In this document: positions 15,072 to 49,907 of the stretch, in pieces
Layout: every line of letters starts with the position of its first letter
How positions within the stretch are numbered: position 1 is the stretch's first letter
Source of the DNA: Pocillopora damicornis
Taxonomy: Eukaryota
DNA length: 64,000 nt
Reading direction: 5' to 3'
Assembly (NCBI RefSeq): GCF_003704095.1
Contig: NW_020846987.1
Location: forward strand, 1-64,000
Position numbers and translations under genes: made by a program
The notes under the pieces: generated by a model
Told to the model about the DNA's origin: nothing
What the model saw: the letters and a program-made list of their open reading frames with translations, nothing else
Database searches by the model: none

Positions 15072-15212
15072 TGCGTTGAAGCCTTTAGGGACAGGACAAC
15101 ATTTCTTGTCTCTCAGGCTGTCCCGGTCAGTGCAGACTCTGGGAAACTGGCCTTCAACCCAGTGTATAGTGACAACAACAAAGACAAGGTATGTGATGGT
15201 GGGGTTAACCAT
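15072..15212 (-). CDS. Tyrosinase-family copy A, 5' fragment only (truncated by gap)
   Basis: MVNPTITYLVFVVVTIHWVEG-QFPRVCTDRDSLRDKKCCP, paralogous to the 29153 copy. Confidence 0.8.
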
Positions 15213-16519
15213 TTTATGAACGGCTCCCTGAGAAACAAAATTTAGGTCTTGTTGTTATCAGTCCTTCGAATTTAGACGTTCAATAATTATGTGAAACAGA
15301 TATCTCTACCTGATTTTAATAGTTTTAATTATGGTTATAACAATGATGATAAGAATTACAATAATGGTGAAGATGATAATAGAAAAACTTTCAAATAGAG
15401 AGAAACTGGGTATGCTTTTTTTGCTTGTTTTTGAAGAAAAGATGAAACTCAAGACAAACGAGGTTAAGGCGATATGAATTTTTTTTAATATCATACGGGT
15501 TACCACTGTACGCTCCAAACACATCTTGTGTCTCTGTTGTCTCTCTCACCTGGTTCTCACGCTTTTTTGGCAACGAATATATCACCGAAATATTTACCAA
15601 AAGGTTTAAACTTCCAAATCCATTGCTGCTCGCTTAAGAAACTGATTATCTCCACAACGTTATTGGAAATGAGCGGCTTTTCTGGCGCAAAATATCTGCG
15701 ACTCGAATTAAAAGAAAAGTTCATCATATCAGGTCCTCAGCTTACAAAGCTACATAATTGACCGCGATTCAAGTGTATTAATTTCATAAAATGGGTCAAA
15801 TTTTCCAGAAAGCATTCCGTAAGCATATATAGCAAGTCTTACTAGTAACTATAATTTTCGGCCTAAAATCAAACTTTATTGTTAGTGACCGTTTCGTTAT
15901 TTTGTCATAAAAACCTCCTTCGATTTTAGTCAGAGCCTCGTTCTCTCTTTAGAAGTAACTCCCGAAACTCGAAATCAATCCGTGATCGGCCTACAACAAA
16001 AGCATATGCATTTCTGCGGGCTTTGACGAACTGAACATAGTTTGATCATCGGATGTTTGAGACATGTGCATCGAGTAGAATCCGCATTCTGTTTCTTGGA
16101 TAGTTATCGTTTCAAATGTGCCTTAGACATTGTTACAACAGGAGCAGTATATAAATCATTTGTAGCGATAATCCTATGAGCGCCTCTTGATTTAGATCGG
16201 AGCGTCGAGGTAAGATCACGTGTCTTCCTTGATAACTAGTTTAATTAAAGCAAACCTTCGTCTTCTTTTAAACTGCAAGCTTAGTTGTTCTTAAGATTTT
16301 GAAATTTCTCTTCTAGTTCCTCTACTTCGTGGTTCTGTTGACAAGTCGACTGAACAGTAAAACTAAATTGCAAAGAAACTATATCTCATCTATATTGATG
16401 GATTCTTAGAAAAAGGTTCTTCAGAATGAGAGTACTGCGTACCTTTGTTCTCAAGATTTCTTAGAATTCTAGGCGTCTCTACAGGACTTTAGACTCTCCC
16501 TATAAAATATACCTTCGGT

Positions 16520-19500
16520 AGACGCTGCCGAATTTTTCTTCTCTCAGAAGACGGCTGTAGTGCCGTCAGCTTTGCATGCGTCGGCAATTTTTACACGAAG
16601 TGTTTCGTCTTGAGCTCCGAATTGCCCCCAAGGATTCAGCAAACGTACTCGTCAAACTGCATTGTTTCTGTCTTCATGCGACAAATTTCAAGTCGAGGCA
16701 CGGAATAACACTTTAGCAAGTATTAGATAGAAATCACTAAATTTATTTCAGAATTAATCGACATAACAAAGCAGATGCGAAGGTACAAAATCTCTACACG
16801 GTTTACACTTATTGTTCGAACATAAATAATATAGCTTTCCTGGAATGCGCTCTTTTTGTCTGCTGCTGTATGAATATATAATTAGTCTGTGACATTCAGT
16901 TGTTGGTTGCTTGAAGGTTTCACAAAAATGTAACATGGTAACGGGTAAAGTGAAATATATCTTCGGTAGACGCTGCAAACTTTTTTTGTCAGAAGACTGC
17001 TGTAGTGCTTTCAGCTTTGTATGCGTCGGCGATTTGTACGCTGCGTTTTGTTTTGAGCTCCGAATTGCCTCCAAGATTCAGCAAACAAGCTTGACAAACT
17101 GCATTATTTCTGTCTTCATATTATAAATTTCAAGTTTAATTACGGAATAACATCCCAGCAAGCATTAGTTAAAAAGCACTAAATTCGTTTCAGAATTAAT
17201 CTACATGACACAGCAGATGCGAGGGTACAAAATCTCTACACGGTTTTCAGTCGGTGATCGAACATAAATAAGAAATCTTTCCGTGAATGCGCTCTTTTTG
17301 TCGGCACTGCTGTATGAATACACAATCACCCTGTGTCATTCAGGTGTTATTTGCTTGAAGAATTCACAAAACTGTAACGTGGTGACGTGTTTAGTTCGTT
17401 GAAAATCTCTTCGAACTTCTCCTAGCTACCGTCAAGAAGGGAACTTAGCAACATACATATCCGCGGCGCGGAACTTCCCTCGCCGAATAAAAACCTTTGC
17501 GCACTTCAAACGTGGAAGTAACACGGCATTCATAAGGAAAACAAGATCAAAGTGTACCTGAACGACGAGCTTGTTAACTGTGCACTCGTAATGCTTCAGT
17601 TTCTTAGGACTGAAACTTTTGGTATCCTTTCCTGAACACTTCTTGCACCGAAGAACGCGCAAATGATCACGGAACGCTGGAATGTACCGCGTGACTTTAG
17701 TTTACCAAAGGAGGAGTAAGCAATGTTTCGTCGGTCGGGCTCCAGTCGATGGCTAGCTCCGTTGTTAGGCATGCTTTCAAATTAGATGCGACTGTAAGTA
17801 GACGATCATGATCCGGTGTTTTCACCGTTCTTAATTTTGAACAATTTTTCGCATTCGCCAGTCCGAAAGACAACCCCAATCCATACCACGGGTTTCTTGT
17901 TTGAAGCAATANNNNNNNNNNNNNNNNNNNNNNNNNNNNNNNNNNNNNNNNNNNNNNNNNNNNNNNNNNNNNNNNNNNNNNNNNNNNNNNNNNNNNNNNN
18001 NNNNNNNNNNNCGAGTGCTCAGTTAACAAGCTAGTCCTTCAGGTACACTTTGATCTTGTTTTCCTAATGAATGCTGTGCTACTTCCACGTTTGAAGCGCG
18101 CGAAGATTTTAACTCGGCGAGGGACGTTCCGCGCCGCGAATATGTTGCTAGGTTCCCTTCTTATCGGTAGCTAGGAGAAGTTAGGAGAGATTTTCAACGA
18201 ACTAAACACGTCACCATGTTACAGTTTTGTGAAACCTTCAAGCAACTAACGCCTGAATGACACAGACTGATTGTGTATTCCTACAGAATAGCAAACAAAA
18301 AGAGCGCATTCCCGTAAAGATTAATTACTTATGTTCGATCAATGAGTGAAAACCGTGTACAGACTTTGTACCTTCGCATCTGCTATGTAATGTCGATTAA
18401 TTCTGAAATGAATTTAGCGATTTCTATCTAATGCTCGCTTGGATGTTATTCCGTACCTTGTCTTGAAATTTATAGTATGAAGACAGAAATAATGCAGTTT
18501 GTAAAGTATGTTTGCTGAATACTGGAGGCAATTCGGAGCTCAAAACAAAACAAAGTGTACAAATCGCCGGCGCATGCAAAACTGAAATAACTACATCAGT
18601 CTTCTGACAGAAAAAAAGTTTGCAGCGTCTACCGAAGATATATTTCACTTTGCCCGTCACCATGTTACACATGTTCGTACAGCAGTGAAGACAAAAAATA
18701 GCGCATTTCCAGAAAGCTATGTTTTTCATATTCGAACAATGAGTGCAAACCTTGTAGAGATGTTATACCTTCGCATCTGTTGTGTGGTGCGGATTAATTT
18801 TGAAATAATTTTTAGTGATTTCTATCTGATGCTCACTGGGATGTTATTCCGCACCTTGACTTGAAATTTGTAGCATGAAGACAGAAATAACGCAGTTGAC
18901 AAGTACGTTTGCTGAATCCTTGGTGGCAATTCGGATTAAAGATGAAGCATACAGTGTACAAATCGCCGACGCATGCAAAGCTGACGGTACTACAGCAATC
19001 TCATAAGAGAAGAAAAAGAGGCGTCTACCAAAGATATATTTTACAGGGAGACTCTAAAGTCTAATAAAGACGCTTAGAATTCTAAGAAATCTTGAGAACA
19101 AAACATGCCGAACAATGAAGCCAGCTGACCGAAGAAGTATTCCTAACTCCCCACTGGGTAAACTAAAATAATTCGATCTGTTCCAGCATTCCGTGGGCGT
19201 TGGCGTGTTATTCGGTTCAAGAAGTGTTCAGAAAAGGATACTAAAAGTTTCAATCCTAAGAAACTGAAGGATTACGAGTACACAGTTAACAAGCTAGTCG
19301 ATCAGGTACACTTTGTTCTTGTTTTCCTTATGAATGCCGTATTAGTTCCACGTTTGAAAAGTGCAAAGATTTTAATTTGGCGAGGGAAGTTCCGCGCCGC
19401 GGATTTTGTATGTTGCTAGGTTCTCTTCTTGTCGGTAGCTAGGAGAGGTTATAAGAGATTTTCAACGAACTAAACACGTCACCATGTTACAGTTTTGTGA

Positions 19501-48522: not shown

Positions 48523-49468
48523 GTGAGAATGAATGTTTTGCTTTCCATTGTATTTTGGTGTCCGTGTTTTGAATTGGTTAAATAGATTCGTAAAACCAGC
48601 CTGCAAAATTGTCGTTTCACCGCGGGGGGTTGAGTGCGCAACAGGACACTTTGCATGAGCGTAGCTGGCGAAGGACTATAGGTGCAAGAACGCCCCCCCC
48701 CACCCCCTCCCCCCTTATTTGGAGAAGTGAATACCGTATTTCCTCGAACAAACGCCCGAGCGCCCATAAAGTTGCGGCTAAAAGAGGTGGGGGGGGGTTA
48801 AGGGCGCTTATTGGTAGGAGGGCGCTTTACCGAGTAGGCGTTAGTTGAGTTAGCGCACTAATAGGGCAGAAAAATCAAAACAACAGGTAAAATACATAAG
48901 GGAATTCTACAAGCGCATGAAGACTGAAATGTCTGCAACCGAAAAGAAACTCGGGAACTGAAGCTCAAAAGGTTTTGGATAAAGTGGCAATGGAAAAAGG
49001 TTTTCGTTGTATCACCACTATTTAAGAAAGTGAGGAAGGGGGGACGGTTACTTCAATTTATGGCCTAAGGTTTGGGTGCTTATTCAAGGAAATACGAAAC
49101 TTATAATCCTTTAAAATTCCCTTAATTTGTAAGTGTTTTCCATCCCCCAATGTTAGTTTTTTAAATATCACAATAAATTGAAAGTTTCAGTGATCTTAAG
49201 CAAGCATTTCAATTTTTTTCCTCTGGGCAAAGTTATGGAAAATTGTGTTTTTGCCTTTTTAGTCCGATGGTAAGAACACCTCTTGGAGAGAGAACTCTAA
49301 GGAGTGTACTTACCCATTCACTTAATTCCAACTCCTCCGCTTCCCACCATTCCTCGTCTCTCCTCTCANNNNNNNNNNNNNNNNNNNNNNNNNNNNNNNN
49401 NNNNNNNNNNNNNNNNNNNNNNNNNNNNNNNNNNNNNNNNNNNNNNNNNNNNNNNNNNNNNNNNNNNN

Positions 49469-49907
49469 TGGACATGTTGACGTACCTCATGAATCGATCT
49501 TTCTCCTCGGCTGTCAGGCTCAGAAAATTTCTTCGTATCAAATTTTTCTTCTGCGTGCAGTTCTTGCCGTAGTAACCAAACGCGCATTTGCTGCAATCGT
49601 AACCTGCATAGTTTGCGTTGCATTTGCAGACTTTGTGGTAAAGACCACGGGGCCAGTCGTGTCTTTCGTCATTCATCTGGAACGGTTGGAAATGGCTGTA
49701 CTTGATTGTCCAGTCACGAATGGTCAATTCCTGGCACTTTCCTCTGTCTCCATCGGAACCACATTGTGTGGTGAAACCTTTAGGGGTAGGACAACATATC
49801 TTGTCTCTCAGACTGTCCCGGTCAGTGCAGACTCTGGGAAACTGGCCTTCAACCCAGAGTGAAATGACGCCAACGAAGAGAATGTATGCGATGATGGGAT
49901 AACCCAT
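49469..49907 (-). CDS. Tyrosinase-family copy G, 5' part (rest in gap)
   Basis: MGYPIIAYILFVGVISLWVEG-QFPRVC...RFMRYVNMS. Confidence 0.88.

Follow-up and report, generated by a model that had tools for sequence, protein, structure and literature searches.

Vertebrate-type tyrosinase genes with putative GPI-anchor signals, amplified between SNW1 and a reticulon gene in the coral Pocillopora damicornis

In Pocillopora damicornis, a single hexacorallian gene for a vertebrate-type (gamma-subclass) tyrosinase has been amplified into at least six two-exon paralogs, which lie in mixed orientation between the gene for SNW1 and a reticulon gene. The cluster is contained in the window analysed here, a stretch of 64,000 nt (contig NW_020846987.1, positions 1 to 64,000 of the forward strand, in the NCBI RefSeq assembly GCF_003704095.1), which consists of 16 contigs split by 15 runs of N. 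The assembled genes encode secretory-type tyrosinases with a TYR-like active site and a hydrophobic C-terminus that lacks a cytosolic tail, and the proteins are probably attached to the membrane by a glycosylphosphatidylinositol (GPI) anchor. What is new is the placement between SNW1 and reticulon, the timing of the amplification within the Pocillopora lineage, the mixed orientation of the copies and the kilobases of sequence that are hidden in assembly gaps.

Copies, catalytic domain and splicing

A tblastn search with one full copy, together with a search of the whole genome, places six tyrosinase coding pieces in the window, and the whole-genome search of the assembly found no further close copy outside it. 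The six pieces comprise three full first exons, one first exon without its start and two N-terminal stubs ended by gaps, and there is in addition an orphan terminal exon, cX, beside which no exon 1 is assembled (Table 1). The resulting tally of five N-termini, four catalytic domains and four terminal exons is exactly that of an earlier sequence-only reading of this DNA.

Table 1. Positions of the tyrosinase exons and of the single-copy or flanking anchors in the window
Feature	Position	Strand	Remarks
c1 exon 1, first 47 codons	15212..15072	-	ATG at 15212, signal peptide, start of Cys-rich domain; remainder in gap 14972-15071
cX orphan terminal exon	25895..25734	-	Acidic stalk, SAA, hydrophobic tail, stop; acceptor side cut by gap 25896-25995
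c2 exon 1	29153-30566	+	Signal peptide, Cys-rich domain, complete tyrosinase domain; donor GT after 30566, phase 1
c2 terminal exon	31526-31665	+	After 959-nt intron; acidic stalk, SAA, PGK, 18-residue hydrophobic stretch, D, stop
c3 exon 1	39802..38776	-	About 130 first codons missing (gap 39803-39902); catalytic domain intact
c3 terminal exon	37796..37648	-	After 979-nt intron; stalk without Cys; SAA before hydrophobic tail
c4 exon 1	43882..42466	-	Complete; covered by RNA contigs
c4 terminal exon	41588..41425	-	After 877-nt intron, spliced out in RNA contigs
c5 exon 1	47106-48522	+	Complete; intron assembled only to 49368; terminal exon in gap 49369-49468
c6 exon 1, first 146 codons	49907..49470	-	Remainder in gap 49369-49468
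SNW1, 3' part	10609..14410	+	Single-copy; left anchor; collinear with Stylophora
Reticulon gene	54466..62776	+	Right anchor; collinear with Stylophora

The catalytic part is unassembled in c1 and c6, and statements on the copper-binding histidines therefore cover c2 to c5, each of which matches Pfam PF00264 with 141-145 bits (cut-off 22.6; E about 1e-41). In alignment A1, the six copper histidines (H190, H212, H221, H379, H383 and H406 in the numbering of c2) are invariant up to vertebrate TYR, as are H405, the His that pairs with H406 in the LHH/HH motif, and E361, the Glu of LEG. N380 directly follows the first His of the second copper site (CuB), and the Cys columns of the N-terminal EGF-like Cys-rich domain are conserved in the same alignment. 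From Q22 to residue 466 the luminal domain aligns with the human TYRP1 crystal chain (E 2e-81), with Q22 falling on residue 1 of the mature TYRP1 chain; a hydrophobic h-region and VEG precede Q22, and signal-peptide cleavage is accordingly placed after VEG. The elements listed by the sequence-only reading are all present: six copper His, HH, an Asn directly behind the first of the CuB His, the Cys-rich domain and a predicted signal peptide. Since the copies have LHH where TYRP1 has LLH, they are TYR-like, and the same likeness to TYR rather than TYRP1 extends to their HN motif. In c4, codon 43595-43597 is Ser (TCC) and replaces a Cys of the EGF-like domain that is conserved in all other copies and in the homologues; P0003, the closest public relative of c4, retains the Cys. 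The Ser may reflect an error in the assembly, an allele private to this individual or the genuine loss of a disulfide.

The list of open reading frames had missed a second coding exon, as the sequence-only reading supposed, and that exon is real. A phase-1 donor, ...AAAG/GTGAG, is common to all four assembled ends of exon 1, and the acceptor, ...TAG/GCAGG, is common to the three complete terminal exons, whereas cX begins 2 nt inside it at the edge of its contig. RNA evidence came from Logan contigs of four runs in four studies, placed on 39903-44338 at ≥95 % identity. Contigs from three runs in three studies skip the 877-nt intron of c4 (41587 to 42465, cut +1) at exactly the predicted sites (42466/41588), and the ends of this joint, CT..AC on the plus strand, are GT..AG on the minus strand of the gene. 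Of one 656-nt RNA contig, 444 nt match exon 1 of c4 and the other 212 nt its terminal exon, with an identity of about 98 %. Contig depth is in the tens to hundreds over the c4 exons and 0-6 over the intron, and the only other joint in this region is a depth-4 oddity from a single run. The 30566/31526 splice of c2 has GT..AG ends and is phase 1, and the direct RNA evidence concerns c4; the splices of c2 and c3 are predicted by homology with it. In its RefSeq model, the Stylophora orthologue shares both the two-exon plan and the ending.

Two features of the RNA mapping around c4 are to be set apart from its splicing. A long poly-G run (41310-41364) in the 3' untranslated region (UTR) of c4, absent from c2, c3 and cX, is where the RNA contigs break. 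An apparent, highly expressed exon at 39953-40145 was rejected as a gene part, being an inverted copy, 97.9 % identical, of the reticulon exon at 57551-57743 (193 bp). This copy stands at the start of the contig that carries c4 and attracts high-depth RNA contigs with loose ends on both sides, which probably derive from the real reticulon gene.

The hydrophobic C-terminus

Downstream of the Gly codon that the intron splits, the terminal exon codes in turn for an acidic stretch, a variable stalk containing Pro or Cys, the tripeptide SAA or SGA (in all four terminal exons), PGK, a hydrophobic stretch of 18 residues with a mean Kyte-Doolittle value of 1.9, a single Asp and the stop. No Lys or Arg follows the hydrophobic stretch, the sole Lys being on the luminal side, and the Ser of SAA/SGA, the candidate omega residue, lies 24 residues from the C-terminus. 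The proteins of the cluster lack the helix followed by a cytosolic sorting tail that is typical of the TYR family; they combine a signal peptide with a hydrophobic stretch extending to the C-terminus, and nothing is left over for the cytosol. The hydrophobic, tail-less ending foreseen by the sequence-only reading is hence borne out in four terminal exons, with that of c4 joined to its exon 1 by RNA. The genome also encodes the GPI transamidase subunits PIG-T (PF04113) and GPAA1 (PF04114), with exon-by-exon matches.

Apart from a short spacer, the classical rules for GPI signals fit these proteins, which, as judged from sequence, are probably GPI-anchored. Read from its N-terminus, the product of each paralog would then comprise a signal peptide that is cleaved off, a Cys-rich domain of the EGF-like type, a TYR-type binuclear-copper domain, a variable acidic or Pro-rich stalk and a C-terminal signal. 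The protein would enter the endoplasmic reticulum (ER), where GPI transamidase would most likely exchange the tail for a GPI anchor. The enzyme would thereby end up in the leaflet that faces the lumen or the outside, either of secretory granules or of the cell surface, and would have no cytosolic sorting tail. So anchored, it would be expected to oxidize tyrosine or phenols of the dihydroxyphenylalanine (DOPA) type. Roles in shedding, extracellular melanization and cross-linking are putative.

Several observations count against a GPI-anchored, multiplied enzyme. The spacer between the candidate omega site and the hydrophobic stretch is only three residues (PGK), whereas spacers in GPI signals usually have 5-10. 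SAV, a weaker site, is the best triplet of small residues that Orbicella and Montipora offer, whereas the omega site and spacer of Exaiptasia fit well. Among the paralogs, the tail is identical at 65-67 of 69 nt, nearly all of the changes being synonymous, at the same time as the 3' UTR is 85-91 % identical, and the Cys of the tail, its Trp residues and the ending LLLAD are kept as far as Orbicella. Such strong conservation is unusual for a propeptide that is discarded and would suit a membrane segment that is retained. RNA support is limited to c4 and assembled contigs drop rare isoforms, so that a minor alternative last exon is possible. No such exon, encoding a helix plus a cytosolic tail, emerged when the window was searched with the tails of amphioxus, hemichordate and vertebrate proteins and of P0040, a transcript that groups with cnidarian sequences and has a transmembrane helix and a basic cytosolic tail; the matches were confined to the stalk and the 3' end of exon 1. 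Finally, the order, orientation and exact number of the copies rest on scaffolding.

The conservation of the tail (one Cys and two Trp included) among the paralogs and robust corals, as well as the short spacer after the omega candidate, would be accommodated if the tail stayed in place as a minimal transmembrane anchor of type I that has next to nothing on the cytosolic side, making the enzyme an integral protein, e.g. of a pigment or secretory granule, that is sorted via its luminal or membrane parts. The 18 hydrophobic residues are just enough to span a membrane, and in the alignment they fall on the first half of the vertebrate TYR transmembrane helix. However, there is no basic residue on the would-be cytosolic side, the C-terminal residue is Asp and the sole Lys is luminal, contrary to the positive-inside rule. 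Moreover, the homologous segments of Exaiptasia (11 residues) and Montipora (13 residues) are too short for a bilayer-spanning helix, and relatives with a true anchor, i.e. P0040, amphioxus, hemichordate and vertebrates, have helices of 19-27 residues followed by clusters of 5-9 Lys/Arg and 10 to about 50 further residues. Taken together, a minimal transmembrane anchor is possible but rather unlikely.

The stalks, which differ among the paralogs by in-frame indels of 9-24 nt and by gain and loss of Cys, vary as might be expected for a mere tether, and coral phenoloxidase activity has been measured in soluble extracts, according to literature as cited in PMC8691061. Both points would agree with phenoloxidases that are effectively soluble and secreted, the tail being a transient ER signal and the enzyme being freed by cleavage of the stalk or by rapid shedding. 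No cleavage site is evident in the sequence, however, and the conserved hydrophobic tail argues that membrane attachment matters, making this explanation improbable.

The tail-less design is common to other hexacorals. It is found in seven spliced hexacoral proteins (from Stylophora, Orbicella, Montipora and Exaiptasia plus three that are transcript-derived) and, in another coral, in two genes that share one gap-free contig, and it is therefore not an innovation of the Pocillopora cluster. P0040, with its true anchor, branches just outside the tail-less hexacoral clade. The balance tips modestly towards the view that the vertebrate-type tyrosinases of anthozoans work as ectoenzymes on a GPI anchor, instead of being type I membrane proteins sorted to melanosomes, and that Pocillopora has recently multiplied the GPI form into at least six surface phenoloxidases with diverging stalks; to the same modest degree, a cytosolic sorting tail and a GPI signal would appear to be alternative solutions within one family.

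More distant tyrosinases show related endings. On L005:4700-6300 (GCA_949826985.1), a tyrosinase (P0051) that groups with cnidarian sequences, on a deeper branch, has the same phase-1 donor and, about 1.3 kb downstream, a candidate terminal exon predicted to encode a Gly/Thr/Ser-rich repeat stalk, SGAG and a hydrophobic end of 16 residues, which seems an even more typical GPI-like signal. Similarly, distant tyrosinases in public contigs (P0107 and P0110-P0117; 30-33 % identical) have a Ser/Gly-rich stalk and then a C-terminal hydrophobic stretch, and tail-less ends may be widespread in the family outside chordates.

Amplification in the Pocillopora lineage and the state of the assembly

In Stylophora, one orthologous gene lies between SNW1 and reticulon, and its flanks match the two anchors of the window, with all of the Pocillopora copies in between. 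Synonymous divergence (dS) is 0.11-0.25 among the paralogs as opposed to 0.33-0.37 between them and the Stylophora gene. In the tree, the copies in the window and their public matches form a clade (support 100/100) that is sister to Stylophora and sits inside the tail-less hexacoral clade (100/99). Synteny, the lower dS among paralogs and the sister-clade position together make the amplification specific to the Pocillopora lineage, after its split from Stylophora. The ratio of non-synonymous to synonymous divergence (dN/dS) is 0.27-0.5, and higher, at 0.65-1.1, for c3 against the other paralogs. As a further observation, c3 has lost both stalk cysteines, while its reading frame is intact over the assembled part; the raised ratio and the loss of Cys point to relaxed constraint or new selection.

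A trace of the duplication process is preserved within the gap-free contig 21265-24459, where the 5' part of reticulon abuts the 3' part of SNW1 at 23042/23045 on the minus strand (region 22418-24287). As this duplication junction shows, an early amplicon extended from SNW1 into reticulon. A single gap-free contig of 1.24 Mb in another coral carries three copies, of which two are arranged head to head at a distance of about 8 kb, and local duplication of this gene in mixed orientation thus recurs. Between the units of the window, an intergenic segment of about 300-500 bp that matches Stylophora L001:8016-8514 recurs many times, in both orientations (16504-21164, 25996-26554, 27218-27694, 33186-33837 and 51256-51815), the orientation flipping at gap 17912-18011.

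The sequence-only reading had described the locus as a tandemly amplified cluster of at least five distinct copies. Lineage-specific amplification stands, although not as a simple tandem array, since the orientations are mixed (-,-,+,-,-,+,-) and there is one contig per copy. Multiplicity likewise stands, and the number becomes at least six. The c6 stub is 100 % identical to a full-length database protein, P0002, that is only 90 % identical to c3, and the c1 stub is 97.7 % identical to another, P0005, that is 82 % identical to c3; c3 is therefore a sixth gene, and the idea that it is the missing body of c1 or c6 was discarded on these grounds.

No two copies are joined by gap-free sequence, each coding copy being on a separate contig, and gap-free linkage to a copy is seen only for flank remnants and the one junction. 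There is no sequence continuity across any of the gaps that cut genes. The sequence next to gaps 14972-15071 and 25896-25995 does not continue c1 or cX; the far side of gap 39803-39902 is the inverted reticulon-exon copy, not the start of c3; and gap 49369-49468 sits between the unfinished intron of c5 on the plus strand and the unfinished exon 1 of c6 on the minus strand, so that it would have to hold the rest of the c5 intron, the c5 terminal exon and about 2.8 kb of c6. Given the missing gene parts and the non-continuous flanks, the stated gap lengths are far too small, and the gene-cutting gaps hide kilobases. Remnants of the downstream flank without a gene body occur at 44439-45518 (plus) and 52259-52706 (minus), each stopping at a gap; counted together with cX, and provided that the scaffold is correct as it stands, they bring the number of units to as many as about nine. 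In addition, a unit at 35125-36522 passes from upstream flank (35125-35523) directly to downstream flank (35844-36522); its gene body is missing, with only about 70 nt of the terminal-exon region retained.

With one contig per copy, 15 gaps within the window and three pieces truncated at contig ends, the multiplicity itself might be suspected of being an assembly artefact, made of allelic haplotigs or of mis-scaffolded fragments of one or two genes. Against this suspicion, the paralogs are 86-90 % identical in nucleotides over units of about 3.5 kb, and a difference of 10-14 %, introns and flanks included, is far more than alleles would show. Public proteins that come independently from other data sets fit individual copies at 94-100 % (c2 at 95.5 %, c4 at 94 % and c5 at 97 %, besides the matches of c1 and c6) and differ from the other copies. 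The copies stay separate lineages in the tree, the duplication junction lies within a gap-free contig, and the other coral carries its three copies, in mixed orientation, on a single gap-free contig. That the copies are alleles or haplotigs was rejected on the divergence, introns included, and on the distinct public proteins that fit single copies, and an artefactual origin of the multiplicity as a whole is most improbable. A practical consequence is that the short-read assembly under-represents the locus, and reads from expression studies will be credited to the wrong paralogs when this assembly is the mapping reference.

Relation to known tyrosinases and significance

Among the nearest known systems are the 'tyrosinase-like' genes of hexacorals, namely Stylophora XP_022787147/XP_022810578 and those of Orbicella, Montipora and Exaiptasia, which share the orthologous locus, the two-exon plan, the acidic stalk and the tail-less hydrophobic end at 64-80 % identity, the best named homologue being that of Stylophora pistillata (80 %). 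Whereas Stylophora has one gene at the locus, Pocillopora has at least six, whose stalks have diverged by indels and Cys changes. The Stylophora orthologue, under either accession, is not mentioned in the Stylophora cell atlas, and a link to the immune-cell and calicoblast tyrosinases of that atlas was discarded, their accessions (XP_022801515, XP_022801546 and XP_022797084) being other genes.

Vertebrate TYR has five exons, as opposed to two in the coral copies. With TYR, TYRP1 and DCT, the gamma-subclass enzymes of vertebrates, the coral proteins share a signal peptide with a mature start at QFPR, an EGF-like domain with ten Cys and the six copper His, and they are 36-40 % identical to that family over the whole luminal domain; they differ in lacking the transmembrane helix, the basic stop-transfer sequence and the cytosolic dileucine tail. 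The gamma subclass was defined by a signal peptide, a Cys-rich region and a transmembrane domain by Aguilera et al. 2013 (PMC3658974), who listed cnidarians with alpha-subclass proteins only; a 2024 survey placed Stylophora and Acropora sequences with chordates.

Classical GPI ectoenzymes resemble the coral proteins in having a signal peptide, small residues at the candidate omega and omega+2 sites, a propeptide some 24 residues long and a hydrophobic end that leaves no part in the cytosol, but the coral tail has a short spacer and is unusually conserved, and its anchor is a putative one. Literature searches returned no report of a GPI-anchored tyrosinase in cnidarians, corals or animals, although their coverage is incomplete and this is not proof of novelty. 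The paper on the P. damicornis genome does not contain the word tyrosinase in its text (0 occurrences).

Lineage-specific expansions of tyrosinases have been described in Porites (PMC8691061), bivalves, amphioxus and nematodes (PMC8691061, PMC3334994, PMC3658974). The Pocillopora cluster is like them in its recent local duplication and species-specific clades, the likeness to Porites holding at the level of tyrosinases in general.

Phenoloxidase and melanin responses are widely measured in corals as immune traits, yet little is established about which enzymes produce them. Should the coral orthologues of vertebrate tyrosinase indeed carry a lipid anchor on the outer leaflet, then coral melanin chemistry would take place at the cell surface or in secretory compartments, rather than in a melanosome reached via a cytosolic tail, and this would bear on the origin of the melanosomal pathway of chordates. 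The amplification in Pocillopora provides a recent set of paralogs with differing stalks, one of them with a raised dN/dS, that is suited to tests of a division of labour after wounding, infection or settlement.

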